DNA of 64,000 bases from Vitrella brassicaformis CCMP3155. Lineage: Eukaryota > Protista > Chromerida. Below the pieces are notes generated by a model. The model was not told the DNA's origin, ran no database searches, and saw nothing but the letters and a program-made list of their open reading frames with translations. The position numbers were made by a program, and so were the translations under genes. The DNA lies in contig CDMY01001028.1 of the NCBI GenBank assembly GCA_001179505.1, positions 1 through 64,000 of the forward strand. Reading direction: 5' to 3'. Position 1 is the first letter of the stretch. Each line of letters begins with the position of its first letter. Positions 44,225-62,847 of the stretch are shown one piece after another.

Positions 44225-47200
44225 TTACATGAGGATCTCGATCTGCCGTCGGTTGTTCCCCCTTTTGACCTGTGAGCCCTCATTGCGGGACAGCCCCACG
44301 TTGTGCGCACCTTTCTCCCTCGACAGCTGCACACACGAACACACACACAACGCACCCGAGATGTCCACAAAGATTGAGACGGATAGGGTGGCACTATCAG
44401 CTGGGCTGGCAGTGTATGTGACCGATCTGCCCAGCCTGTCCATATTGCTCTTGATCTCCTTCAAGTACTGCTCCACCTGTGTGAAGGAAAGATCGCCATG
44501 TCTCTCTCTCTCCCTCTGTGCCTCCCCTCTGTCTCCGTGTCAGTCAGTGAATGAGTGAGTGGTCGACCGTTTGTTCGAACTGCTGTTTGTGGTTGTCTCT
44601 GCTGTCTGCCTTTGACAGTGAGCTCTCGAGAGGGAAGGGGTCCTCCGGCCCTCCAGCATCGACATAGCGCTCGATGCTGTCCTCACCCTCGCTGCACGAC
44701 ATCTCAAGCACCTGACCCACCAGACAAACACACTCACACACACACATGGGCAGACAGAGGCTACGTGTGTCTCATGGCCGATGTCTTGCAGACACTGACC
44801 GACCTGTTTGCCCCCGGCCGGCCCAATGTCAGAGTCGTTGAAGGCGAGGGGCTCGTCGAATGCCATCGCCTCTATGTACCGAACCAACACGCGCGGCGGC
44901 ATCTGGGCCTCCGTCGACACGATCTGTGTGTGGATGGATGACAAACCGACAGACAGGCAGGCAGGCAGACAGACAGACAGCCGTGATGGAATGTGTCCAT
45001 CCATCCATCCATCCATCCAATGAATGTGCGTACCAATCGTGCTCTGCCCATCCTTGCCAGCGCCCCTACATTCGCGAGGACGAGTGCATAGCTGTTGGCC
45101 AGCTGGGCTATCAGCAAGTTCAGCATCACCAGCACGGCTGCCGTCACAAACACAATGAGCAGCACCTGCAGAAAAAGGTCACGGTGCGCGCCGCGCAGGT
45201 CGGGACGCCTACACACACAGACACACACAGAGAGACAGACAGAGAAGGAGACATTCGATCCATGTGTGTGTGTGTATTCGCCGGCCCACCACAGGTTGAG
45301 CATTAGGCTGTAGAGTGTGAGGAAGGTGGTGCCCATGTTGTCAAAGTCATCTTGCAGGGCCGGTCCTCCCTGCACCCATCCATCCATCCATCCACAGGCG
45401 GCCTCACACCCACACTACCTGTGTCGTGAATATATCGATGCCTGTGCTGAATGCGAGCAGCAGGACCACCATGACGGCGACGAGTTTGAACACGTCCTGG
45501 AGCAGCGCTATGATGGCGTTGAAAAAAGCCGCCAATGTTTGCCACACACCGAACGACTCAATCACCAACAGAACCATCATGCCGCCTGCACACGACACAC
45601 AGAGCTTCTCACTGTCAGACAGACATAAGAGTGTGGCTCACCAGCCGACGCGCTGACGACTTGCCACTGATAAAAGTGTTCAAAGAAGGAAAGAAATCCC
45701 GCATGGCCGCCCGCTGGCAACGAGTCGATGGTCTGCATCCACACACGTGTGGTCGGACACACACACTGTGGTTGTCACGCTCGTGTGCGTACTCTCGAGG
45801 CGTGCTGGGTGGAAAGAAAGAAAGGGTCCAGACCGGCAGCCCAGAAGAGAAACAAACTACTCACACACACACACACACACACAGGGACACAGACGTGTGG
45901 CTGTCTGTCTGTCTGTCTGTCTGTGACTCTGTGTGTGACCTGAGAAGGAGTCTGAGGACGTTCCATGTGTTTGTAAGATGGTAGGGGACCCGCACACCAA
46001 ACACACCGACAATCGTCTCACCGTGCTGCAGCTGACCTGCAGACAGACAGACACACACACAGAGGTAGATAAGATACACGCCCAGACAGACAGACAGACA
46101 GACAGACAGGCGTGCATTGGTCTCTCCCTCCTCCCTCCGTCTCTTTGTTTCTATTTGTCTAACTCGTGGCCACATGGACGTGTTGGCATGTGTAGATGAG
46201 CGTGAGCACCCAGGCCAGCACCCGACACACAAAACTGGCCAGGGGGTAGTGGCGAGACAGCAACGTATAGCCAGAGGGGAACAGCACCAGCTGCATGACA
46301 CACCAAACACCACACGCCGTACCATACCATAGCAGCCAGCCAGCAGGTTGGTTGGAACATCTGAGGGCCTACCTGCAGCAGGTAGATGCCCTGTATCCAC
46401 AGAAACTTGGACCTGCCGTACAGATACCACTTCTTGTCCACAATGAACTTCAACACTGACGACAGACGTAAGCACACAAGACGACCGACGTCTGTCTCCC
46501 TGTCTCTCGCTGTCTCTCTCTTTCCTTCTCTCCCTCTCTATGTGTCTGTGTGTGTGTCCCCGTCTGTCTGTTTCGCCCACCAGGGTGCAGGAAGAGCTCT
46601 GCGTGTCCCTGTCTGACCAGTAGTCCAAGCGGCGACTGCCACGCAGAGCTGCCCTTCGGACAGCCCCATAACTCACGGACCTATATCGAAATGCACACGC
46701 CACCCACCCACCCACACACATAACGCACACAATGCAATGCAGTTTCCATCAGGAACTTACGTAGTAGTTGACTTTTCTGTATCCGTTGAGTATTTGGTCT
46801 GACCGCCAAATGTGTCCGTCCAGCAGGTCCGGCAGCAGGGAGGGCGCAAGTTCTTGCACAGCATCTGAATGATGTCGGGGTGGTGCTTCCACAGCTCGTC
46901 CCTCCTATAGTAGAAGAACGATCTGTCTGCGCGGATGGCCAGCAAGTCCCGCAAAATGACGCGAGCCATCTGCACCTTGCCCTCGTTAATCGCCCTGATC
47001 ACGCCGACCAAGAAGAAATACAAAGCGAATGCACACTTGTATGTTGTCGGCTTGTGTGCTGGATCGACTTCCTCACCAATACAGGGGCGAGACATGCTCC
47101 CCATTCACTTCCACAGAGCACGCCCAGAGAGCACGCTTGTTGCGGGGAGCCTCACACAGTGCCAACTGCGAGAGACAGAAAGACGGTGGGTGTGTGGCTG

Positions 47201-50200
47201 AATGTATGTACCACATCTTCTTTGCCAGTACTCTCATGTCGTCAGCGCTGCCGCATATGAGAGTCCTGGTACACGCAGTTAAGTTGGTACTTGACGTATG
47301 TGTCTCTCGTCGGTCTCTTATCCGTCCCATCTCCCACCGCACCCCGCCCCTCCCCGTCGCACACCATTCACGCCATGTACACACAGATGACGGGATGATT
47401 GCCAGCTGCACACACGAGCGGCACGGCACACAGGCTTGCAGACCTCAACGACGCAGCTGCCCTGACTTGATCCACGTACCATTCAGCACCTTGGTCAGCT
47501 CAGACCCGGTCTGAACGACATCCACATCGACCACCAGGTTGAGCGTTAGAGCCATAATACATGAATCTGTACCACTTCCCAGAGTGCCTGCCACGCAGCT
47601 GTGTGTTCTGCCGTCCACTCCTCCCCCCCTATGCTCGCGAATGTCTCAACGATGAGCTTCGAAAAGAGCGGCACGTGGGACGGTCTGACTCCGTGCTTAA
47701 TGTGGCGGAGTGCCTACAGGGCATGCCGGAAGGGATGCATGACGCAGCGAACGAAGGTGGACTGGCGTCCTGTACTGTGAGCTGCCCACCAGTTCCTTGT
47801 TGTTTTGCCACACTTCGGCAGGGTCATCGAGATGGGCCAACAGCATCTTCAGAATCTGACCGAAGATCCTGCCGGCAAGCCAGATACGTATATGTCTGCG
47901 CATCCTCTGGATGCGGTGCTTTGTTCTCACCGTCCATATGTGGCTGATGGCCGGACGAACAGCTTCTGGAGCGTCGGGGCGTTCGAAAACAGATTGTGCA
48001 AAAAGACTATGCCGATTTCCTGACACCACACATCATGCAGCAACCCATTCAGAGGTCGCTCCACATATCCAGCTGCCCCCCTCCACCGTCGTGTCCATCC
48101 TTGACAAACGCACACTGGCAATGTCTTCGAAGCTGGCAGTCTCTTCTTGTGCGTCTCCCCAGCCAACAAAGGCAGAAACACGCCGGCTGCTGGAGACCTA
48201 TAGGAGACTCAACGACAGCAGCATTTGTCTGCTCGAAGTCACCATACGCAGCTTCACTTACAATGCTGGTACGCGGAGGTGGCGACTTGACGTTGATGCT
48301 GTCTCGCTTCTTGTCTCCCGCTGGACCGCCCCCTCCTTGAGGCTGCTGCTGCTGCTGGTGCTGCTGCTGGCTCAAGGCAGCGGTCCTCTTGCGGTCCATC
48401 ACCTCACGCGCATGGTCAGACCCTGTGCGGCGCCAAATTGGGATGTACTCATCTGCGACCCGCTGTCTCTTCTCATCTCACGTGTGCTGAGGGTCGTGGC
48501 GCTGGATGTCTCGCTCGTGGCGTCCACCTCGCGGATGGCGAGGGGACCGTGGCTGCCCTCCGGCAGCTGCGGCGTGGCGTCGACGGACGGTGCCAGCTTG
48601 CCCTGAGCGACATATGGAGCCATAATCCTGGTGTGTGGCATGTTGTTCCGGAATTAATCCAACCACCTCATCTGTCAGCTTCTGTGATACAGATTTCCGG
48701 AGGATCCCCCAAGAGTCCACAATGGTCGAACGGTACCTGGCCCAATAAAGCGAACGGGTGTATGTGGCGATGGGCGGTCCCTGGTTGGATCACTCACTCG
48801 GGTTTCCATCTATCGGTTCTGTCCTAATGGCGACAAAGCAAAAAAACTCGTCAAACACGTGTGCACCTGAGTCGCTTCGTCCGTACACGTACATGTATGG
48901 CGACCTCCCTGCACACATGCAAGAGAGGACCAAGCCAGCCTTGTGTGTAGCTATCTGTGTATTTCCCCCATCGTCTCTTACCAGAGCCAGCTCCACACTT
49001 CCTGCTGTGCGGCGTCCCATCGCGCCCCCAGGATCTCCTTCAGCGTCTTGATGGCCACCTCACTCAGCTGCGCACCCGCAATACCACACAAGTCATATGG
49101 ACGCGTCACACAATGCACGTCTCCACGATTTGACTGCCGGTTGCGTTGCTTGCCTTCTTGATGTCGACTTGGGATATGAGGGTCCCTGGCTGGGTGCCGA
49201 GACCGAGGGACTTGTTCAAGCCCTGACAACACATACATGCAGGAGATGTGTAGACACGTCTAGCTCTTCCAAATGTGGACCTGCTTGCCTTAAGGTGTTC
49301 CAGGTCAGTCACGATGCGCACCATCTTACCCAGAAGGTCGCATAATTCCCTGGCCATCCTCTTGAGGCATACAAACAAACACAAAGAGGGGATTCCTGTA
49401 CAACCCCCACGTGTTGTCTTGTACGTATCTGACATGGTGTAGCTCATTGCTGTTTATGCTGGTCACGCGAACACCAACTGCCGTGGTCTTTGCCCTCATC
49501 CCAAGGCTCTCAGCGTCAACCATCAGATTGGCATGCAGCTTGTATTGGCTGACACATAAAAGGAGACATCTGGATGTACAGGGAAGACGGACTGCAGCCC
49601 GCCATTCTTTTCTGTGCTTGTACAAAGTCTCAATCCCGAACTCATCATTGATAACCTGTACATAAAGACCAATGCACACTGTGTGCACAAAAGTGCCTTT
49701 CTCTGCCACTAGCAGCAGCGCGCACTCGTCCGTACGTACGTTCCATACGAAGAGGAGTGATTCGACGCGCCTCTGGCTGGCCGAGACAGACGACATGAGC
49801 AGCTCAGCTACACCATTCCACAGCCACGTCCACGCCTCTCCTACCTGCCATCAATCAAGGTCAAACGCATCCGTCCCCATGGAATATACTCGTGTAAAGA
49901 TGGGTTTGCCGCCTACGTTCGAGTCCCACTCGTCGCCCAGCACCTGCTCCCTGCAGAAAGGCATACACTACTGAAAGAATGCGAGTGTCTTGCCTTCTCT
50001 CCCTGTCGGCTCGCCTGTTCCAGTGCAACGAGGACAGCCTGTTGGAGGATCGGAAAGTACTGGAAGGGATCGTCCTACAGCATTGCAGCACAGTCAGTCA
50101 TTGAAGAGGGGGAATGTATAGCAATGAGTATACGGACCAAGTCAGCAAAGTAGTGGACGTGTCTGAGACCGAGGATGCGCATCGACTGGTCCAGGCTCAC

Positions 50201-50922
50201 CAAGTCGCCAGCAAATGAAACCATAGTTGCCTATGTTGGCAACCATCGATACACAGACGCATACAGCCATAGACAAACACAATGAAGGGCGTGTGCGTGT
50301 ACATCATTTATGCCTTCACATCCTCACTGACATACAAGAACTGTCTCGAATGCTTGCGCCATGTACATGCTGCATACGCAACCACACACACAAAGGCACA
50401 CAGCATCTCGACAGGTGGTTGTTGCTTACGCGCCGCGTCTGTAGATGGATTGGAGCTCAGGAGCATAACGCAGCATCTTGGAAAAGATGATCGCGCCTAT
50501 GCTGCGTTGTATACATAGATAAAGACCATGAGTACATGACGAAGAACCTCGATGCGGGCCATCAGCAATCATGCCACCTCGCACCTGTCTCTTGCCGTCT
50601 GCTTGCTGAGCAAGCGGATAGAAACCATCAAAGAAATCACCATGTATCCCGCAACTGAAGTCGCTTCTCTTCTGTGTCCTTACGCTATGACACGACGCCG
50701 TGACTCCATGATGAGATCGAGGTAGACCTCGGCCGCCTCAGCCTCATCCTCCCCCAGCCGATCGTCCACTGCTCCCTCTATCTGCTCTACTAAGTGGTCC
50801 GCGCTGAAGTCACTCTTGGGAGTGCCGACCTCGACATTCGCCCCATGACACGCCTCACGGACAAACAGACGACGATGTCCATTCGTGCTGACCTCCACGT
50901 CTCTCTCGTATGCTAGGCGCAT
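44225..50922 (-). CDS. Triple-globin plus TRP-like cation channel fusion, copy A (one apparent frameshift at ~46850)
   Basis: G1: IMESRRRVIA|KQTARDS|IGAIIFSKMLRYAPELQSIY..LDQSMRILGLRHVHY..DPFQYFPILQQAVLVALEQ|VLGDEWDSN|VGEAWTWLW. G2 lacks the His. G3: EIGIVFLHNLFSNAPTLQKLF..|IFGQILKMLLAHLDDPAEVWQNNKEL|ALRHIKHGVRPSHVPLFSKLIVETFASIGGEEWTAEHTAAWQALWE. Channel: ELFLHP|VLKFIVDKKW, FDNMGTTFLTLYSLML, FVTAAVLVMLNLLIAQLANSY. 3' end approximate. Confidence 0.85.
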
Positions 50923-50934
50923 GCAGCCGATGTC

Positions 50935-51718
50935 ATGATCATTTCGCGACGCGGCGAACGAGCGAGTCCCGACCCCCCGACGGAGGAGGGCAACTCATGC
51001 GAACTGGGGGCCTCCTCGACGTTTACAGCGAACTGGGGGCCTCCTCGAGATAAGATGCGGCGGAGACGGCCCGCAGACGACGGTCCGCCAAGCCAGGCCT
51101 CAGACGACCGGCGCTTGGCCTCTCGCCTTGCTCATCTTCGATTCATCGGTAACTGGACGGACCGATGGATGGACGTGTACAGTACGTTCCAGAACAGGAT
51201 TGCGTGGAATCATTTCAGAAGCCTATGGACAGTGTATCACGGGGGCAGCGGCGGGGGGTATAAACGCTTCCCAATATCGCAGTGCGTGACAATAAGAGAG
51301 AACACTCTTAGCGCCATCTTCTGTGAGTTTGCGTGATTGCTTCTCTTCCAGGTACCGAAGCAAGACCGATGCCCTGAAGCATGCCATCCTATACCGCGAC
51401 GACAATTGCCCTCTGGGAAAAACCGACCTTCTTCTTTTGGATGTCTCTCCTTATGCTGATACCGTGAATTGGGACACGGCCAAGATGGAGGAGTACGTCG
51501 CGACGACGCAAGGGATCGCATGGACCAGCAGTACGCCACATCGCTGGAGAGACAAGGAGGGCATGCGAGTCGGCATCCGCGTGGACATGCTGGAATCACG
51601 GGCACGCGGTGGCGGACGGAATCAACTTGAGATACCATTCCACGTCTTCCCTGCCGGGTCACAGGTCAGCACCGCTCTCCAGTATGCGCGCGCATGGCGC
51701 TTTCACTATGTTTCCTAA
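50935..51718 (+). CDS. Small protein with two AP2-like DNA-binding domains, 2 exons
   Basis: Exon 1 ends at 51281 and exon 2 starts at ~51351. Spliced: FQNRIAWNHFRSLWTVYHGGSGGGYKRFPISQ|YRSKTDALKHAILYRD, matching the ApiAP2-like pattern (W..W.V...K.F.I.KY..A...AI.YR). A second copy reads TQGIAWTSSTPHRW..IPFHVF..VSTALQYARAWR. Confidence 0.6.
50999..51048 (+). repeat. 21-bp direct repeat, 29-bp period
   Basis: gcgaactgggggcctcctcga at 50999-51019 and 51028-51048. Confidence 0.9.
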
Positions 51719-53168
51719 AACGCCTACATGCGCAATCCAAAATATCGAGGATTCCAGCATGTCCACGCGGATGCCATGATTCCAGCATGTCCACGCGGAT
51801 GCCATGTCAGGGATGGCCTTGCCAGCCCGCATGCGCCATAACATGACCCACGCCACATAGTGGCCCATTCGTTGCTTTCCACCGTGATCGACGTGCGACT
51901 CGATCCCCACCAGCCGGTAGCTTCTTTCCTCTCCCCGGTCATCCACCTTGTAGACCAGCGGACACATGACCGGCCGTGGGTCTCTGTCCTCGCCAGACAG
52001 GATCGGCTCCTCCTGGCCGGTCACGGGGTGCCTGCGCACTCCCGCTGGCTTGAGCAGATAGCGGCTGATGGACACTAGGAAGAGCTGCCGGTGGGAATGA
52101 ATCTCCTTTGTTATCCGAGTCGGGGTGCGCTTGGCGCACAGGGCACAGTCGACATCTTCAACCTCGCCGCCACTATCCGTACCACCACCCCCAGTGGCCC
52201 AGCCGGTGATGGCGTCCTCCATCTTGATGGGAGCCGTCTCTGGGTGGTAGATGTCGTAGTGAGGCCGCTGTGCGGCTGCCAACAATGTGTGCGCGTATTC
52301 TGTTTTGTGGCGGACGGCGGAGCAGATCGTGCACTTGATAGTGGTGTCGAGGGAGGCACCGATGAGCCGGTGCGTGGGGATCTCGCTGAGGTGGTCGGCC
52401 TCAAATTGCTGCTCTTGCCTCCCGGAGCGCTGGCTCATCTCAGAATTGTCGATCAGCCTGAATTCAGATGGTCTCAGCCCGATCACACAGGTGATGGGAC
52501 GTGCTATTTGTAATGCCTTACCCGGCGAAACACTCACTCGCGTCCTGCTCGGCCTTCGGCGTGAAGCTCCCGTTAATAGAGCTGATATTGTCGACCCACT
52601 CTTTGAGATAGAGACTCCGCCGCCGTCTCCCGTCTGCCACAGATTCTCGGTATGTGTGCAGCGCCAGTTTCTCGGCCAGACATAGGAAACACATCCCCGT
52701 CCACAGTCCGTCCTCCACAGAGAGCCGTCCCACGTCTCCACGATGAGAGACGGCTCGGCTCTCGCAACATGTGCACGAGTGGAAGTGCGAGACGAGGAAA
52801 CGCACGAGGGACGGGGCGTGCGTGAGGAGTTGGAGCAGCCCAAGCAGGTGGCAGGTCATCTCAGCTTGCCCGCTCCTTCGTATAAGACCGACAAGCGCTG
52901 GCTCCAAGTCAGCATCGTCTCCCTCCTGCAGCACATCATCGTCGGCTCCGATAAGATATCTCCGATTCGAGATACGGCTCTGCGGAGAAGCAGCCATTGG
53001 AAGATTGACCCTCTGCTGCGTTTGAAGATTGACGCCCAAGGGAGACGCGCCAATCGTGATTGTAAATTCTTCCAGCTGGGATGCTGGTTGTGGCGCTCTG
53101 TTTGCGTGTTTTGCCGATGGCAAGGCATGGCGGTATGAAGAGTATCCGGGACTGCAGCACACGGACAC
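51659..53168 (-). CDS. Divergent ubiquitin-specific protease (peptidase C19/USP-like), 2 exons
   Basis: Cys box GLIRRSGQAEMTCHLLGLLQLLTHAPSL and FTPKAEQDASE in exon 1 (GG|gtaagg donor ~52521). Exon 2 has Zn-finger pairs KCTICS and DCALCA, YRLVGIESH, His box MGHYVAWV, and WTCWN. Confidence 0.72.
51750..51805 (+). repeat. 28-bp tandem duplication, with an inverted 26-bp copy at 51572-51597
   Basis: gattccagcatgtccacgcggatgccat x2 (51750-51777, 51778-51805). The reverse complement ggcatccgcgtggacatgctggaatc is at 51572-51597. Confidence 0.92.
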
Positions 53169-53283
53169 ACATCCATGATGGTGTATATCGTAAGAGGGAG
53201 CAATGTGTAGTCATCGCATGGAGACCAATAAACATCATGAGATATGCTCATGTCCGAAGGGGAAGGGGGGCCTAGGCATGTCC

Positions 53284-53435
53284 GCGAAGCATCCCTCGCT
53301 CCGCCATACATGAATCACACAGATTGACTGACATGCCGTCGGCGCTTCGGGCACCTTCGGTGCCCTCCGCATTTGAGTCAATCGCTGGCTAGTCGTTGCT
53401 CGGCTCGGCCCTTCGGGCCTCGCCTTCGCATTTGA
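53284..53435. other. Cluster of GC-rich DNA mini-hairpins with TTC/GAA triloops
   Basis: gcGAAgc (53284-53290), gggcacc-TTC-ggtgccc (53349-53365), ggccc-TTC-gggcc (53407-53419). The two larger hairpins are each followed by cgcatttga (53368-53376, 53427-53435). Confidence 0.7.
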
Positions 53436-54201
53436 TCACCACAGAGAGGCTGCAGACTTTGTTCAGGGGTGGCTGACATGCGATGGCGTGGGTGGGATGT
53501 GTGTCCACGGGCAACTTCACGGCCTTTGGATGTCCGAAGTGGAAGCATCAATGCCAATCATGGTTACCCTCTGAACGGCCTTCTGAAAATTACGGTCGCT
53601 GTCGCTTTGCTGCTCTCATTTTCAGGAAGGCCGCACAGGGGGACGAAGGTGGGGGGGGAAGCCGCCAATCTGCTCTGGTCATCCTCTTGTCCCTCGTGCC
53701 ACGTCCTTCTGAGTGGGTCGCTATTGTCCATGCCGTCGACGACTCTGAATCCGAATCGCCCTCGTGATCACTAGCCAGTGGCATCTCATCAGACCTGCGC
53801 TCTGCCTCTTTTGATCTCGCTGATCCGCCCAACGACGCGTTCGTTCGTTCGCTCTGCTCCATGACGTGGATCATGGCGGTGAAGGGGCACCTTGATATCG
53901 TGTCCATGTTCTGCGCAGCAGCTGTGAGACTAAGTGGGTGGTTGTGGGGAAGGGGAGGGTGGCCGGGGGGAAGAGAGGCCATTGGAAACACTTGGATGCT
54001 GGAATTTAAGATTGCAATCTCTTTAGAACGGCCAACGGTTTGCAAGGTTCGGAGAATGATCGGGGACGGGCTGCCTCCCGGGCGGACCCCCGGTAGGCTC
54101 GAGAAGATGATGTTGTCCCGAGAACAGGTAAGGCGAGTGTCACAACCAAGGGACGACTCACGCAAAGTGCATCCCGTGTGTTTGTTCTCCTTGCGCTGCA
54201 G

Positions 54202-57200
54202 CCTACCAACCCTATGCGTCACCTGCAGCAAGAGCTCGAAAAGCGGCTTGGCAAACCAGTCACGTCAATCCCTCTCGACACGGACGAAAACATCGATGAG
54301 GTTGAGCGAGGATCAGGCAACATCAAGACACCGCAAGAAAGCCTCGCCAGTGAAGGAAGGATCCTCAATCAACGCGACACTTCGGCGGAGGCCGGAGCAG
54401 AGAAGGGCCGTGGGACGCCACGGTCCAAGTCACCCCCCATACATAGCCCTGTCAGGACGATGCCTCAACCCGAGCAGCCAAGGCCGTCGGAGCCACTTCC
54501 GTCAGCACAAGAAGAAGGCGGCTCGGCTGATGTTCCAATGCCGCCCGCCACGCCACCTGCGGCTACGACACCTCTCTCCCCCCCAGGTGACCATCTGGTC
54601 TGGCACAAGGAAGGCCTTCCAGATGACAGCAGGATAAGGAATGTCCATCGGCCGACTGTCGAGCGTCGCTCATCTTTCGAGAAACGCAAGGCCAAGCGAT
54701 TCGACTCGCTGGAGGAACAAGGACTGCTGACGGGGCCTGTCGGCCCCCTGGATGTGATCAAAGAAGGCGCCAACGAAGTGATGGAGGCGGATGCGACAGA
54801 GAGCAAGCTCGACCAAGAGACTATCGATGGCTACCACGCCATTATCAAAGAGAGCTGGCGGCGCGTGATCACCAAACAGGTCAGCTGCATCCACTAAATG
54901 CTATTGGCCGCTCATTTCGCGTCTGTCGCCTCAGTCGAAGAAAAATAATGTGGGCGCCTTGGTGAGAAAGGCAACCGAACAACAAAGCCAGCCAAGTATC
55001 TGCGTGTGTATGTGTCGTGTGTGTACTGCGCGTTTCGGCAGGTATTTGACTCTCTTCTGCGCTTTGCCCCAGAAATCTCTGTCCTCTACAGACATGGCAA
55101 AACGTACATGTCTGCCGCTTTCGAGACTGTCTTGAGCGCGATGGTTGCCTTCTCGACGATTGGGGACGACGTCATGGTGGAGAACGCCATGCGCATCCTG
55201 CCCTTAGACACGTCTTCTACCTATCCACTATCAGCGATCCGTTTCTCTACTTTCCGATCATGAGGCAGGCCATTCTTGCAGCCTTGGAGCAGATCCTGAG
55301 TGACGAGTGGGACTCTACTGTCGCGGCCAGCTGGACGTGGCTTTTCGACTGGCAGTCGAAGCTCCTCATGGACGGCATCCGCGTCAGCCAAGAGAGGGTG
55401 GACGCCATCACCACCACATGGCAGGTCATCAATACACTGGGACGAGACACGTTTGTTTTGAAGCTGCACGCGAACCTGCTGGTCGAGGCTGTCGCACATG
55501 GGAGAGAAGACAAGCTCGACCAGGTCCGTGGGTGGTCGTGTGAATAAGGGGCCGACGTACCGTATGTCCGAGCGACATGCCGTGTGTCTCGCGTGTACAT
55601 GAATCGGTGTCTGTGCGTTTGTGCAGCAAGTGGCTGTCGATTTGATGGCCTTGATTGAGGACATGGTCGACGCCTGTACCAACATCCATCGACTGAAGGT
55701 GAGACGCATGACAGGCAGGCGATAGAGACCGAGGACAGAGCGTCAACCCTTGTGAAAACGTCAGGGTATGAATACGACCATGGGCATTCGCGTGAGTCCC
55801 TCTCTTCTTGGCATTCTCGATCTCAGAAGTGTACGTACGGAAGAAACAGGCCAGTGGATGCATAGAATGCGTGCATGTATACGATACAGCTCAAGGAGGT
55901 GTGTGAGCGATCTTTGCGCGAGGTCATGGGTCCGCGATGGCAAGATGCACAGACAGAGGCGTGGCGATGGCTCTTCGAGGTGGCGATCGAGGAAAAGGCC
56001 GGCAGATGGAGAAACAAGTGTGGATGGATTGAACGAGCCGACATATCCGCTCACCAATCTGTTTTCTTTGCCCATGTCTCCTGTCCGTTCAGGCACAAAA
56101 AGCGAATCATTGCATCCATGCGGCTCCTGAGGCGCAAGATACAGACCATCCTGGACGAAGACGAAGCGGCCAAGCATGAGCACCATCACAATCCAAGCCA
56201 AGTCGCCCCCGCGCAGCCTGACGCCCCCGTGTTCAGCGATGACGACGAGTCGGATAACAGCGACGCGGACGGCCTCAAGTCCCAACCCAAAAGGAACAGC
56301 CGCGCGGCCACCGACAAGAAGCACTCCAACGCTTTGCCGGACACAGCCAAGACGGAGAAAACTTGGCGGTCGTTCTTTGCTTACTTGTGGTGTGGGAGGA
56401 CGACAGGACATCGGAAAGACAGTACGAGAGCCGCAAAGGACAGGAAGACAATCGCGGATGCTGCTGCGGCGGCCAAGAAGCGCCGAGTATCCGTGTTTAC
56501 GATGTTGCCTACGATGCCAACTGTCGACGAGGCCGTGCTGAGTGTGGGTGAGCCGCCAAGGAGCAGCATAGTGGTGTCTCAGTTGCCAAAGGCGGCTCCC
56601 TCTGCCTTCGAGCTTATCGGGGAGGGACGCGGGGCGTCGCTGGACGAGGTGTCGAAGGTGACGTCGTCAAGGAGAGATCGTTTCCCGACCTATGGCTATT
56701 GGGCCCTTTCCTGTCTTTTAGATTGTTGGCCTGAAGTTTCACAGTGAATTGTTTGCAGAGGGTGAGTGGGGACTCATTTCGATAAGATTTCCCCCCTTAT
56801 CAAGTGTTGCTCTCTTTCGTTTGTATATCTGTGTTGGCGAGTAGCACCTAGTCTGAGCAACCTTTTCCTGAAGCCTACGGACGCATATGCGAGGCAAAGA
56901 TAGACGTTATCTGGCGCCCCAGTACACGGAATAAGCTGTGTGTCGGTCTGTTGTCGGTGGTGTTTGCAGGGTATTTGTATCGGTCATTTGAATGCTGTTA
57001 CAATCGCTCGATGACCCTGAAAAGCTGTGGCAGCAGCAGAAGGACCTCAGGTGAGCCAGGAGATGCTGCTCCTTCTCATGCACTCGGTATCTGGAAGGAC
57101 TTGGTGCTGACTGGCTTCGTTTGTCAGCCTCAGACACATACAATTTGGCGTCCGTGCCGCACACGTACCCATGTTCGGTAAGCGACGACAGAGAACTGCC

Positions 57201-60200
57201 GCCTTACGCAGACAATACCAGTGTCGTATTTGCAGCAAAACCTTTTATTCAGACGCTCCGCTCTCTCGGCGAAGACGAGTGGACCGACAAAATGACCGTT
57301 GCGTGGTCTATTCTGTGGGAAATTGTACTGAGAACAACACACACTGAAGCCATAAAGCGAAGCGTGCATTGCCATCTTCACTTCCAGACTGGAGCTGGCC
57401 TAAATAGGTCTCTTGCTGCTGGCGAGCACCCTGTGACGCGGTAGACGGCAGGCAGCGCACGCCACACAGCAGTGCGAATCGGACTGTCGCTTGCTTGGTT
57501 CTGGCGCCAGGGCGCTGATCTGCGGCGGTGTGGATGACATCAAAGTGAGGGACGGAAATGCAGGGAAGAAAAGGGCGAATCATACATACGTGTCTCGTGT
57601 GTGCCCTTTTCTATGCTTACAGACTGCTCTCGGCGACGCCCCTCGGAGGTAAGCACGTGAGACTTATCTCAATCGAAGTGCACACACACGGGCAGGAAGG
57701 CAAGCCTGTGTATACTGGCTCTAGTCTTGGAGACATGGAGGAGACATCTGATCTTACCTTTTCAGTCTACGTGCTCTGTGGGAGTGCAAGGCGGAGGTAC
57801 ACGGACAACACGTGTCTCCCTTATATTGGTAAGTTAATGCCCGAGCGGTTGTCCCCATCCGCTCATGCACGCCTTTTGTGTTTATACTTAGGGCCATCAG
57901 AGAGGGCAAGATGAGTGTCGCCCGCACCTTGCTACAGGACGTGCTGGCCATTCGGGCAGACATGAACGGCTACTACTATGGTAAGCACACACATGCGTAT
58001 CTACCACAATCGCCGTGATTGATCGATCTACGTGTAGGCAGAGACGAGCTGTGGCAGTGCCACCCGGACCTGGTCAAGGCGCTGTGCGACGAGGCGCCCT
58101 CACTCCTGCCGGACTTCCTAGATGGACACGTATGGCGGTCCGATCAGGTGTTTAAGGGACTCCGCAAGGTGAACCAACCGCGAGAGCATCAAGTCGTACA
58201 AATGCACATACGACGTGTTGTGGCACTGCCAGGTCAATTATTATGTCCGTGAGCTGTGGGGCGACCCTTGTGAGTCCAGTAGCGCTTGGGACCAGCCGTT
58301 GGGTCGTTTGGTGAGGCTGGGACACGCAGAGCTCTTCCTGCATCCGGTTGTGCCCTATATCGTCAACAAAAAGTGGCGGCGGCTCGCCAGCTTCACATTT
58401 TTCAGAGACCAAGCGGTTTACTTATTGCAGGTAAGAGCGAGAGCGAGAGCGCGCGAGAGACACAAGGGTGCATGTGGCATGTCGATAATGACGGGTTGTC
58501 TGTCTCAGATCGTGTTCTTTGTATTGGGCTACAATTTTCTGATCTCCCAGCCATTTCCGTCTTTCTGCTGTCGTGCTGCTTCATGGGCGGTGTCGTGTCA
58601 GTACACCATCAAGCACGTCGGCATTGCATATCGTAGGCCCGTCTCCCTGCTGCCTTTCGCACCTTTCTTCCCTGACGCATACGTACGTGTGTGTTTTCAG
58701 GTCAGGCGTGTCGTGGCGAGTCACAGGTGGTTTCGTTTGGCGGCCTGCGCCTCGCTGTGCCCTATCACTTCAAAAATTCATGGAACGGCTTTAGAGTACT
58801 CCTCAGGTCGAGGAGGAACACTAGACGAGATGCGCGTGTAAAACGCGGCTCTTATCCTGTTTTCATTTCAGCCTTCTGCTGTTCTGTGCGGCTTCGGTGG
58901 ATCCGTGGGTGGTCCAGCAGGCGTCACCGCTTTCGTGTACGCACCATCTATTCTATAAGTGGAAGGCGCTGTCGTCGGTGAGTGGGGTCATGATGTGGCT
59001 GCTGTCCATCCAAGTGCTGGCTGCGCTGCCCTCACTGGGCGCATTCCTCTTCGCCCTGTCAATCATACTCAAGGACGTCATCAAATTCGTCCTCTGCCTC
59101 GTAAGCAGGATCATCAGAAATGCACCACCCATCCCATGTGCCTCCCTGCCGGTGTGTGCCTGATGTGTGTCAGTTTGTCCTGTTGCTGTCCTTTGGCACA
59201 ATGCTGACGGTCTTTGGCCAGTCGCGGGGTCTCGACGAGTTCAGAGACCTTTCGACGAGTCTCGTTACACTGTACTCGTTCATGCTAAAGGTGTGGCAGC
59301 CGGACTTTGCGGGGAGACACGATGACCCATTCCTAGTAGGAAACAAGTCGGGCAGGCGCATGCGCTCACTCATTGACGGACGTCTGGTTGTTTGTGTTGT
59401 GTTGCTTTCAGGTGACGTCCTTTCTGCTGTTCGTGACTGTCGCTATAGTGGTGCTGCTGACGCTGCTGGTGGCACAGATGCGGACCTCGCTACACCTTCT
59501 GACGCAAGACATGACGGCCATTGCTTGAATGAGCAGAGCATACCAGGTCGTCCCACGCACACATGGGATGAAGAGATGGTCGCACACGCCCTCATCCATC
59601 CGTCCTTCAGGTGGTTGAGACGGAGGCCATTCTGCCAACCCGCCAAAAGGTGTCTCTCTACGATGCCATGCATTTCGACGAGCCACTGGTAGGCACACTG
59701 AGGGACTCACGAGACCGTGACTCTGTGTGTATGTGTCAATCGCTGCGTGTGTGCGTAGGAGTTCCACGGAGAGGGCGACCTCGGCCCAGGAGGCGGGAGG
59801 CAGGAGCTGGAGAGGGTGGACGACACCAATATAAGAGACAGGATCATCCGGTGTCTCGACAAGGGTGGTCCCGACGACCCATGGCCCACCGACAGACACG
59901 GATCAGCCGACACTTCACACGAGTTCGAGACGGCCACACAGAAGGCTCTCAAAGAGTGCAAACACTCCGTCGACAGGGTCATGAGGATGGTAAGATGCGG
60001 GTCACAAATGGAGGCTCGCGGCGAGCCATGCCACGAAGTGTGTCCTTGCATGTTGGCAGGCCGTCAAGAAGGATCACGTCTCCGGGTTGTCGCGCAAACT
60101 CAAGGGAAAAGGAGGGGGCAGCATCAGTGGAGGCGGCACCGAATGTAAACCCCTCACACACTCTCACATACGACATGCCGTGGTCTCTGTCTGACTGTCC

Positions 60201-60573
60201 CTCCCCGTCGACTCCTTCATCAGCGCATCTCGGGAGCGTGTTCACGGGTCTATCGGGGAATCCGACGAATAAGAGCACCGGCATCAGTGCGTCTCTCCAG
60301 AAGGCCGCCGCCGCCAACCAGCTGCAGGCCGTCTCCCGCATCATGACGCGGCACAAGACTGGCAATAGTGTCGCGGGATCTGAACCAGACACGGCCGGAC
60401 CCGAGCACAACCATTCTCAGCCAAAGCTGCGGCGAGGCAAGTCGAATGCGGCGCTGAAGCGTTCTCTGGGTGGTGAGAAAGACTCGAGGACGTTGAGAGA
60501 GAGGTTGGGTTCCCTCGAGCAAGCGGAGCAGAGCGGCAGCATGACGGGACGACAGAGGTGGACGGGTGAATGA
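54202..60573 (+). pseudogene. Triple-globin plus TRP-like cation channel fusion, copy B (probable pseudogene or disrupted allele)
   Basis: Collinear with copy A: [13 protein letters not shown]|..[17 protein letters not shown]3 SLDDPEKLWQQQKDL|SLRHIQFGVRAAHVPMF|AKPFIQTLRSLGEDEWTDKMTVAWSILW, ELFLHPVVPYIVNKKW, LGAFLFALSIILKDVIKF, FVTVAIVVLLTLLVAQM. Lesions: 1-nt deletion at ~55199, in-frame TGA at 56989-56991, in-frame TGA at 59526-59528. 5' start may lie upstream (53600-54130). Confidence 0.8.
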
Positions 60574-61092: not shown

Positions 61093-62847
61093 TCAAAGCT
61101 CATCTCTACTCCTCATGTCCTTCTTCCTGAACCCACTGTCACCCTGACCGTCATATCGTAGCACAAACAGCAAACCCTTGACTGGCTCCCCGTACTCAAA
61201 CCTAGGATAGATCCGCTCCCCGTACATGGCCGAAAATCCCCACCTGCCACCCTCACGCACCACATACTCTCGCGTGTGTGCAAAACGACCCGTTGTCTGC
61301 ACTTGGTAGCCCTTGTCCTCTTCGTCACTCGTCAGCTCACTCGTCAGCTCCTCCACAGAGAATGCCAAGAAGCCCCTCCCATCCTTCCGAATAACCTCGC
61401 TTGACCGCTGAAAAAACTCTCTTAAGTCACCAACGTACACGAGCACATCAGCAGCAGTAATCAGGTCCACCTTCCCGTGCAGCCCATGGCCAGCGAGTGC
61501 CCCGAATCCACTCTGCAGATCACCGACATGAGTGGCATTGTACACACCTTTCTCCTCAGCGAGCCTGATCATTTCTGGCGACAGGTCGAAGCCATAAAGA
61601 AAGGTCGTCACGTTGCGAAACACTTGGCCCGAGAGTCCCGTGCCACAGCCCACGTCTAGGACGTTTCTCAGGGGGTAGGCTACAAGCAAGCTCTCCTGGA
61701 GCCGATCGACGGCCATTCGGATCATCAGGGGCGCCTGATAGTGGAGCTTTTGCAACGACTTGTCGAACGTGTCGGCATAGTGGTCGAATAGCGACTTGAC
61801 GTAGTCGGGTGATGCTTCGGTGAGTGTGGAGTCCTTCTGCATCGACCGCAGGGAGTAGTCGGCAATGCTGTTGCTCTTGTCGAACCTAAGGGCACGGCGG
61901 AAGTGCTCGGCGGCGAGCTCGACACAGCTCCCTGGCGAACACTCATACTTGTACTTGCGTGTGCCCTCCTTGCCAGCTTCCTCCCAGTAGGTGTAAGTCC
62001 CGGCTTGGATCCGCAGCAGCCCCTCCGCCAGCCGCGTGTGCATTTGGCTGATCTCCTCGTTCGTCAGGAAAGCCGCGCCGTCCCCTCTACGGGCACTTCG
62101 AGCGTCGATCTCTGTCTGGTCAGTAAGGTCACCCATCAGGCCATCCAGGATCTCCATCGCTATCTGATAGGTCTCAACTGCTTCAGGAAGGCTCTCTAGC
62201 GTCTCATAAGCAGAGCCCATGTTGGCCGCCGAGGCCACAGATGTCCAGCTGAGCGAAGGCATCTCACTCATGGCCGCCTCAGCGGCGATTGCCTGCTCAT
62301 AACGATCGATGGCTTCCCAGTAGTGATGTGTGTCGTGAAGCACCGTACCCAAGTTGAAGAGAGCGTCCGCGTGGTCAGGCTGAAACGCTACAGCAGCCTC
62401 GAAGAGCCTCCTGGCCTCGTCAAGATCCCCCTTGTCGACCATAAGAGAGCCCATGTTGCAGAGAACAGACACGCGAAGCTCCGCCAAGGCGGAAGCGTCC
62501 TTTATCTCCCCGTTAGACTCATCCACACCTTCCAGTAGAGAAACGATACTTCGGTATGCCTTTTCTGCTTCATCCTTCCTGTTGCTGCGGTAGAGTGCGT
62601 TGGCCTCGTCGAGATGCTTTTGCAGCAGAACAGCGGGGGGGGACAGATCTGCTGCTCGGCTACCATCTCCGTCATTGAGTGCATGAGTCGAAAGGGAAAG
62701 AATGGCCATGCAGACCACAGCCGAAATAAGAGGCATCGAACCGATGAGCACTAGCACCGAGAAAGAGAAGAGCGCAACCGCCTCACAACTTTGAGCTTGC
62801 AGCAGATCTCTCACGTGAGAAAAGGGCTTCGTCAACGTTTCGCTCAT
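61093..62847 (-). CDS. Intronless TPR-repeat SAM-dependent methyltransferase (COG4976-like) with signal sequence and C-terminal RDEL
   Basis: Single 584-aa ORF. The likely start is Met38 at 62736 (MPLISAVVCMAILSLSTHA). TPRs such as VLCNMGSLMVDKGDLDEARRLFEAAVAFQPDHADALFNLG. YVKSLFDHYADTFDKSLQKLHYQAP, SAM motif I VLDVGCGTGLSG, GFDLSPEMI, LITAADVLVYVGDL. Ends RDEL*. Confidence 0.87.
   Translation of the reverse strand: MSETLTKPFSHVRDLLQAQSCEAVALFSFSVLVLIGSMPLISAVVCMAILSLSTHALNDGDGSRAADLSPPAVLLQKHLDEANALYRSNRKDEAEKAYRSIVSLLEGVDESNGEIKDASALAELRVSVLCNMGSLMVDKGDLDEARRLFEAAVAFQPDHADALFNLGTVLHDTHHYWEAIDRYEQAIAAEAAMSEMPSLSWTSVASAANMGSAYETLESLPEAVETYQIAMEILDGLMGDLTDQTEIDARSARRGDGAAFLTNEEISQMHTRLAEGLLRIQAGTYTYWEEAGKEGTRKYKYECSPGSCVELAAEHFRRALRFDKSNSIADYSLRSMQKDSTLTEASPDYVKSLFDHYADTFDKSLQKLHYQAPLMIRMAVDRLQESLLVAYPLRNVLDVGCGTGLSGQVFRNVTTFLYGFDLSPEMIRLAEEKGVYNATHVGDLQSGFGALAGHGLHGKVDLITAADVLVYVGDLREFFQRSSEVIRKDGRGFLAFSVEELTSELTSDEEDKGYQVQTTGRFAHTREYVVREGGRWGFSAMYGERIYPRFEYGEPVKGLLFVLRYDGQGDSGFRKKDMRSRDEL

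Follow-up and report, generated by a model that had tools for sequence, protein, structure and literature searches.

Two transcribed paralogues in opposite orientation

The window analysed here, bases 1-64,000 (forward strand) of contig CDMY01001028.1 of Vitrella brassicaformis CCMP3155 (GCA_001179505.1), carries two related genes, paralogue A and paralogue B, in which globin exons are followed by those of a predicted ion channel resembling the TRPV channels of animals. Paralogue A lies on the reverse strand (44225..50922), between a public start at 50922 and a TAA stop at 44225-44227; its extent was drawn from tblastn against B, RNA contigs of run X5, the exon chain and public gene models carrying PF00042. 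Paralogue B lies on the forward strand (54214..60573), from an ATG at 54214 that is likely its start to a TGA stop at 60571-60573, and was traced through 28 exons, a 7103-nt X5 RNA contig and checked splice sites. The genes stand head to head, with a gene for ubiquitin C-terminal hydrolase (UCH; 51659-52997, reverse strand, a 424-aa public model with PF00443) between them as they diverge. In order, A encodes an N-terminal region, globin 1 (G1), a second globin without its proximal His (G2), a spacer of polyglutamine (polyQ) and low complexity, globin 3 (G3), an ankyrin (ANK)-like linker, a TRPV-like channel with six transmembrane (TM) helices, and a conserved C-terminal domain. An earlier sequence-only reading of this DNA had placed an inverted pair of globin-channel genes at 44225-60573, and both limits coincide with gene ends, 44225 ending the TAA of A and 60573 being the last base of the TGA of B. 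The motifs that it quoted (SPLYWAI..G..., LLAIRAD, YY..DELW..HPD, LFLHP....V.KKW, LGAFLFALSIILKDVIKF, LTLYSLML, LNLLIAQLANSY and ARMGRA) all occur where it placed them.

The inverted pair is genuine, with 51% amino-acid identity over 586 aligned codons on opposite strands. The proportion of synonymous differences (pS) is 0.70, at saturation, and that of nonsynonymous differences (pN) is 0.33. Similarity in a translated comparison was confined to short exon blocks, and the introns could not be aligned. Judged by these sequences, A and B are true paralogues that were duplicated anciently. Because pS is saturated and pN far lower, the duplication is old, and purifying selection has acted on both copies for most of the time since.

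Public annotation divides each paralogue into two genes. For A these are a 613-aa globin protein with PF00042 (47368-50922) and a separate channel protein that extends up to 47237, both on the reverse strand; for B they are a 332-aa protein (54056-55263) and a 1014-aa protein, P0001 (55368-60573), both on the forward strand. P0001 skips stop-bearing stretches by means of introns that have no support in the RNA contig. Among the public runs over the locus, X1-X4 behave as genomic DNA and X5 as RNA; X6, labelled RNA, gave nothing. The RNA contigs are assemblies and not single molecules, so that minor isoforms would be hidden in them. Their depths for the two genes are 76 and 44.

For paralogue B, a single 7103-nt X5 contig covers 54700-60600 with 27 joints and places globin and channel exons on one spliced RNA. 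The gene has 27 introns of 55-117 nt between its 28 exons, 26 of them GT-AG and one GC-AG (56894-56969, forward strand). Fifteen of the 27 joints were listed, and the others were derived by combining the positions of the listed pieces on the contig with canonical splice sites and homology, the piece boundaries given by the RNA contig being enforced in the enumeration. The exon chain sums to 3950 nt, which is exactly the length that the contig spends on this stretch, and its conceptual product is about 1469 aa. Stop-free chains of the right total length around S6 were rejected because they read the equivalent of an A intron as coding and skipped a conserved block; the chain that we kept is the homology-consistent one, with its TGA included. 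The B contig continues for 2.5 kb beyond 60600 (to about 63200). A longer B protein was rejected, as the frame ends at 60573 and nothing beyond is conserved with A. Because this extension crosses a convergent methyltransferase gene and shows no conservation with A, it may be an untranslated region with overlapping 3' ends or an assembly merge from unstranded data. The gene that it crosses, which encodes a TPR/methyltransferase protein, lies at 61093-62709 on the reverse strand, and a pentapeptide-repeat gene starts at about 63099 on the forward strand.

For paralogue A, one 2310-nt X5 contig joins the exon of the conserved C-terminal domain, S6, the pore, S5 to S1, the linker and all three G3 exons, and then continues upstream; a second X5 contig takes over at a CAG (polyQ) repeat. 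The intron at 47266-47380 (reverse strand), between HPVICV and TLICGS, is retained in the sole RNA contig, which is continuous over 47232-47405 (X5 record 23). The TGA at which the public 613-aa globin model stops (47368) lies in this intron, which an in-frame GT..AG splice could remove. In S5, splicing in the RNA contig starts from a GC donor at 45442 (intron 45370-45441, reverse strand), 23 nt upstream of the GT donor at 45419 that would keep the frame. The CAG repeat itself (SQQQHQQQQQPQ; 48332-48374, reverse strand) lies in the spacer between G2 and G3, and DNA and RNA contigs of several runs break there. The introns of A are rich in short tandem repeats, (CA)n/(GA)n and (GGAT)n (45204-45251, 45364-45403 and 44939-45031), which were repeat-masked when reads were aligned.

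The globin-channel fusion is real at the transcript level in both genes. Separate mRNAs for the two parts, the outcome that the sequence-only reading had held to be fatal to it, were not seen, since one contig joins both parts in each gene. Splicing, which that reading had worked out by hand, is shown by the RNA contigs as well: the 28-exon chain of B agrees exactly in length with its contig, and a single contig links G3 to the C-terminal exon of A.

Lesions in both reading frames

Neither spliced mRNA has an uninterrupted reading frame. Paralogue B carries three lesions on the forward strand. The first (55199..55203) is the loss of one base in the Pro codon of MRIL-P-LRHV (CTG CC CTT AGA CAC), two residues before the proximal His of G1. 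The resulting frameshift falls inside an unspliced 480-nt exon (55041-55520) that is gap-free in RNA (X5) and DNA (X1, X2) contigs, and the upstream frame stops at 55261. The second (56989..56991) is an in-frame TGA in the E helix of G3 (VFVSVI*MLLQSL), where A has AAG (Lys). The third (59526..59528) is an in-frame TGA just after S6 (TAIA*MSRAYQ), in place of the K or R that the family has in G-[YF]-A-[KR]-[ML]-x-R-A, encoded in A by AGG (Arg); the conserved C-terminal domain of B is still in frame downstream of it.

Paralogue A carries one lesion (46848..46855, reverse strand), a run of 8 nt (AAGAACTT) in place of the 6 nt found in B and in all relatives, inside the linker exon 46761-46994. 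It causes a frameshift after ..IIQMLCK and before ELAPSLLPDLLDG; a reading that does not change frame there meets a stop at the start of the next exon. At this site the RNA piece 46759-46993 and the DNA contigs from X2/X3 (46566-47327) are identical to the window with 0 gaps. With frame-keeping splicing and a single X at the indel, A reads through 732 codons without a stop, from the end of G2 to the C-terminal domain.

The lesions fall at positions that the family conserves. In neither gene do the DNA (X1-X4) or RNA (X5) contigs show a reported base change, insertion or deletion relative to the window. Because DNA and RNA contigs match the window, the lesions are those of the sequenced strain itself and did not arise in assembly. 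Neither copy can yield the full-length fusion by ordinary translation. The sequence-only reading had treated the locus as a working candidate channel, and these three lesions in B and one in A, confirmed in independent DNA and RNA contigs, speak against that. The frame-breaking lesions lead us to regard A and B as expressed pseudogenes, or at best as sources of truncated products, of which the 613-aa triple-globin open reading frame of A would be an example. As the lesions are few and synonymous divergence is saturated, inactivation appears to have been recent.

Domains, channel fold and intact relatives

The sequence-only reading had claimed three globin folds in each gene; the globin domains are present, with the qualifications that G2 lacks the proximal His and that both frames are interrupted in the genome. 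The proximal His (F8) is found in G1 (LRHV) and G3 (LRHI) of both copies, and G2 has Asn at the equivalent position in both; its counterpart in relatives is a shortened, poorly conserved domain. G3 of A (47573..48019, reverse strand; exons 47931-48019, 47790-47868 and 47573-47713) has an open frame, with its proximal His in ALRHIKHGV. Its exon 47573-47713, covering helices F to H, matches Pfam Globin by itself (E 6.2e-7, 30.4 bits against a cut-off of 22); the G-H helices of B G1 reach 13.6 bits, below the cut-off of 22, and Pfam was mostly uninformative on the other single short exons. In the family alignment, G3 of both A and B has Phe at CD1 and Tyr at the E7-equivalent position. The last globin carries an R-H..Y-G-V that does not vary among 14 homologues and that A and B also have. 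In the intact homologue P0019, the last globin aligns end to end with bacterial globins of the Hell's-Gate type and with the solved structure 3WFW (E 2e-9 to 5e-9), its R-H..Y-G-V falling on their proximal-His region. The family globins are predicted to be of the heme type and to bind heme and ligands.

In B, the linker (57388..58168, forward strand) consists of one ANK-like repeat (SPLYWAIREGK..LLQDVLAIRAD) followed by a TRPV-type linker domain (YYYG, HPD, LLPDFLDG, RKVNYY), and the matching stretch of a homologue model can be aligned to the linker and final ANK repeats of TRPV1/2/3/5/6. The B channel core (58233..59546, forward strand) comprises pre-S1, S1-S6, a pore helix (LVTLYSFML) and the start of a TRP-helix equivalent. 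It is followed by the conserved C-terminal domain (59611..59989, forward strand; FDEPLEF..GD.GPGGG.Q ... DRIIRC..GGPDDPWP), whose columns are invariant or nearly so in the family alignment, and then by a non-conserved tail to the stop. The corresponding core of A, from pre-S1 to S6 and the TRP-helix equivalent (LNLLIAQLANSY...ARMGRA), was placed by the RNA contig and exon chain at 45034..46680 on the reverse strand (exons 46581-46680, 46373-46455, 46162-46290, 45940-46031, 45793-45859, 45642-45732, 45419/45442-45585, 45290-45369 and 45034-45208). The public B model, P0001, has a weak PKD_channel match (15.9 bits).

The channel fold was modelled with AlphaFold (AF2), using a 23-sequence alignment, on residues 425-930 of P0008, an intact homologue of 953 aa with 33% identity to B over this stretch. 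The model has a mean predicted local distance difference test score (pLDDT) of 88.3 and a predicted template modelling score (pTM) of 0.83, and contains a helix after S6 (419-437), a beta-hairpin (106-121) and C-terminal strands (455-474). In a Foldseek search of the PDB, its best 50 matches were all TRPV channels (TRPV1-4; E about 1e-10, template modelling scores 0.55-0.60, about 570 columns). VIA-align gave Z 18-20 over about 410 aligned residues with TRPV1-6 and insect Nanchung/Inactive; residues 1-480 of the model cover TRPV3 265-743, TRPV1 251-752, TRPV2 213-716 and TRPV5/6 166-638, and the overlap takes in the last ankyrin repeats, the linker, pre-S1, S1-S6, the TRP helix and the C-terminal strand. 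These fold matches sharpen the TRP-like channel of the sequence-only reading to a TRPV-like one. Six TM helices and a re-entrant pore helix between S5 and S6 are supported by the Pfam scores of homologues and the AF2 model, with A and B aligning throughout; the helix after S6 and a linker beta-sheet that takes in the C-terminal strand are both present in the P0008 model. When P0019 was modelled in full (pLDDT 76.9), helical domains of globin size preceded the channel module. The family is predicted to form tetrameric, cation-conducting channels.

The channel module thus superposes on TRPV1-6 and Nanchung/Inactive from the last ankyrin repeats to the C-terminal strand, and, as in TRPV channels, S4 lacks a regular arginine ladder in the family sequences. 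However, sequence identity with TRPV is only 12-16%, and the family departs from TRPV in several respects. In the position of the N-terminal ankyrin domain, which has about six repeats in TRPV, there is one ANK-like repeat (SPLYWA..G....A..LL.DLLAIRAD) preceded by one to four globins, with or without a cytochrome b5, and no member gave a Pfam Ank match. The TRP helix carries G-[YF]-A-[KR]-[ML]-x-R-A (ARMGRA in A), which differs from the usual TRP-box consensus. The family also has a C-terminal domain of its own (FD.PLEF..GD.GP.GG.Q ... DP-W-P), and is found in algae, not animals.

Relatives were identified with the 66-aa B exon at 58233-58430: a search of 1.84 billion proteins with it gave 52 significant representatives. 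Few relatives came from word-index searches with P0001 and P0017. Full-length intact members are single chains of 950-1500 aa. They carry Pfam Globin in one to four stretches (E 1e-12 to 9e-36 where there are two to four), Ion_trans and/or PKD_channel above gathering cut-offs in P0002, P0008, P0019, P0053, P0058 and P0064, and in some cases an N-terminal cytochrome b5 (Cyt-b5 E 7e-23 and 2e-17). The profile check suggested by the sequence-only reading, Globin together with Ion_trans, therefore succeeds in intact homologues. Sources include the cryptophytes Hemiselmis andersenii (P0058, A0A7S1DKS7), Chroomonas sp. CCMP1168 (P0019) and Hanusia phi and the dinoflagellates Durusdinium trenchii and Effrenium voratum, the latter group suggested in that reading as a possible source; further members are open reading frames from transcriptomes and metatranscriptomes, and the intact homologues probably include a chromerid relative. 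Maximum-likelihood analysis unites A, B and P0017 with support, places the transcriptome protein P0002 as sister to this clade and keeps the dinoflagellate, cytochrome-b5-bearing and cryptophyte groups separate. P0017, an aberrant 875-aa model, is probably a third Vitrella copy.

From the N terminus, family members have an optional cytochrome b5 and one to four globins, the last always with its proximal His. There follow one ANK-like repeat, a TRPV-type linker containing a beta-hairpin, pre-S1, S1-S6 together with a pore helix, the TRP-helix equivalent and the conserved C-terminal strand domain. A and B retain every conserved family column. Between the last, His-bearing globin and the ANK-like repeat before the linker there are always about 45 residues. 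A design that joins globins to a TRPV-like channel is supported as real, as intact in other algae and as spanning three algal lineages.

Databases call members only 'Globin domain-containing' or 'Ion transport domain-containing' proteins. NCBI and UniRef list P0062 (Durusdinium trenchii, 970 aa), which aligns as a globin-linker-channel protein, under 'NEDD8-like protein RUB1'. That name looks wrong, given the alignment and the lack of any ubiquitin-like Pfam match. Full-text literature searches returned no description of a globin-channel fusion and no paper on a globin-gated channel, in keeping with the statement in the sequence-only reading that none is known to have been characterised; a review of globins mentions neither channels nor alveolates. 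Two Guillardia theta proteins, EKX33177.1 and EKX39126.1, have been described as having more than 1000 residues, three globin domains and a putative N-terminal cytochrome b5 (Biol Direct 2014, PMC4101818), in a paper in which the word 'channel' occurs 0 times. Their layout is the same as that of members P0061 and P0072, and they probably belong to this family.

Readings of the locus and of the family

We put at about 0.8 the probability that A and B are two old head-to-head paralogues of an algal family of globin-array, TRPV-like channels, still transcribed and since broken by lesions, and that they are now expressed pseudogenes. Several points weigh against this. The TRPV-like fold was modelled on a homologue 33% identical to B and not on a protein of the window itself, and for the family heme binding, tetramer formation, conduction and coupling are all predictions from sequence. 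Both in-frame stops of B are a TGA directly before a conserved ATG, within the same heptamer TTGAATG (56986-56994 and 59523-59531), where A has AAG-ATG and AGG-ATG. We treat this as coincidence because the natural stop of B is also TGA and no SECIS (selenocysteine insertion sequence) was found, but it may point to recoding or reinitiation. The lesions may also be specific to one strain, since all runs probably come from the same culture. Spliced forms that remove the retained intron of A may exist; forms that avoid the lesions of B are unlikely.

For the intact members, the arrangement suggests how a signal might reach the pore. In TRPV channels, the linker and TRP helix couple cytosolic domains to the S6 gate. 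Because the family shares these elements, the ligand or redox state of a heme could modulate gating. The globins would stand where TRPV channels have their ankyrin-repeat domain. The heme of the last globin would receive the input signal, either as bound O2, NO or CO or as a redox change, and this signal would pass through the ANK-like repeat, the linker sheet and the TRP helix to the S6 gate. The outcome would be a cation channel modulated by gas or redox state. A stronger version is that intact members are gated directly by O2, NO, CO or heme redox at the last globin, making them a gas-gated class undescribed so far, with the Vitrella pair either a recently decayed remnant or kept alive by recoding at the two TGA-ATG sites. 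We hold this version only tentatively, as somewhat less than an even chance.

Known systems offer two partial precedents. Globin-coupled sensors (HemAT, globin-diguanylate cyclases and kinases, and the globin-Roadblock protein HGbRL, 3WFW) likewise attach an output module covalently to an N-terminal heme-type globin that has a proximal His, and 3WFW is the best sequence match of the family's last globin among solved structures (E 2e-9, full length). In the family, however, the output is a eukaryotic ion channel and not an enzyme, chemotaxis domain or regulator, and the globins form tandem arrays that include one unit without His; the likeness is one of architecture and does not imply descent from the sensor lineage. 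Channelrhodopsins and bestrhodopsins of unicellular algae combine a cofactor-binding sensor and an ion pore in one polypeptide. They use retinal and light, whereas heme and gas or redox state would be used here, and there is no relationship of sequence or fold.

A different role for the globins is possible, though we consider it rather unlikely. They might be catalytic or protective, acting as an NO dioxygenase or as an O2 buffer near a Ca2+ channel with cytochrome b5 as reductase partner, or they might be structural replacements for the ankyrin domain. Cytochrome b5 is the usual electron donor to globins, and its presence at the N terminus of some members makes a redox-cycled enzyme of the NO dioxygenase type possible as well as a redox sensor. 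The closest solved globins are flavohemoglobin-like or of the Hell's-Gate type, not of the sensor type, and one domain of the array has no proximal His. However, the last globin, with its invariant R-H..Y-G-V, keeps its fixed distance of about 45 residues from the ANK-like repeat, and the order is fixed in three algal lineages, as would be expected of a coupled sensor.

Turning to the Vitrella pair, the public models could be taken to mean gene fission, in which globins and channel are now made as two products (such as the 613-aa triple-globin of A and a channel starting from an internal Met) that act as separate subunits or independently. Both genes are split in the public annotation, the 613-aa model carries PF00042, the G1-G3 region of A has an open frame, and the only A RNA contig retains the intron whose TGA closes that frame. 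Against this, globin and channel exons share one mRNA contig in both genes, channel open reading frames would require internal initiation, and the channel part of A is itself frameshifted downstream of the proposed start. Fission of B would put its breaks within a globin E helix and within the TRP helix, and intact relatives are all single chains. We consider fission improbable. Still less credible is the proposal that both genes are functional, their lesions being errors, strain artefacts or bypassed by recoding (TGA read as selenocysteine or tryptophan, read-through, frameshifting or reinitiation at TGA-ATG): although both B stops are TGA immediately before ATG, conserved sequence goes on in frame after each, and RNA contigs cover both genes well (depths 76 and 44), the terminator of B is itself TGA, an Rfam search found no SECIS or other Rfam family in the window, the two indel sites are not slippery heptamers, the stops replace ordinary K/R positions, and independent DNA and RNA assemblies agree with the window.

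The two Vitrella copies are broken, and their public models, which patch the breaks with invented introns, are unsuitable as templates, and the intact cryptophyte and dinoflagellate orthologues are the proper objects for functional work. Heme-based gas sensors drive enzymes, kinases and chemotaxis receptors; to our knowledge, ion channels are influenced by free heme or gases only indirectly. Gas gating of the intact members, a reasonable inference from their domain architecture, would, if true, allow a single protein to link O2, NO, CO or redox state with membrane current and Ca2+. It could supply a gas-controlled actuator for cell physiology, and would bear on how algae, including coral symbionts, sense O2 and NO.

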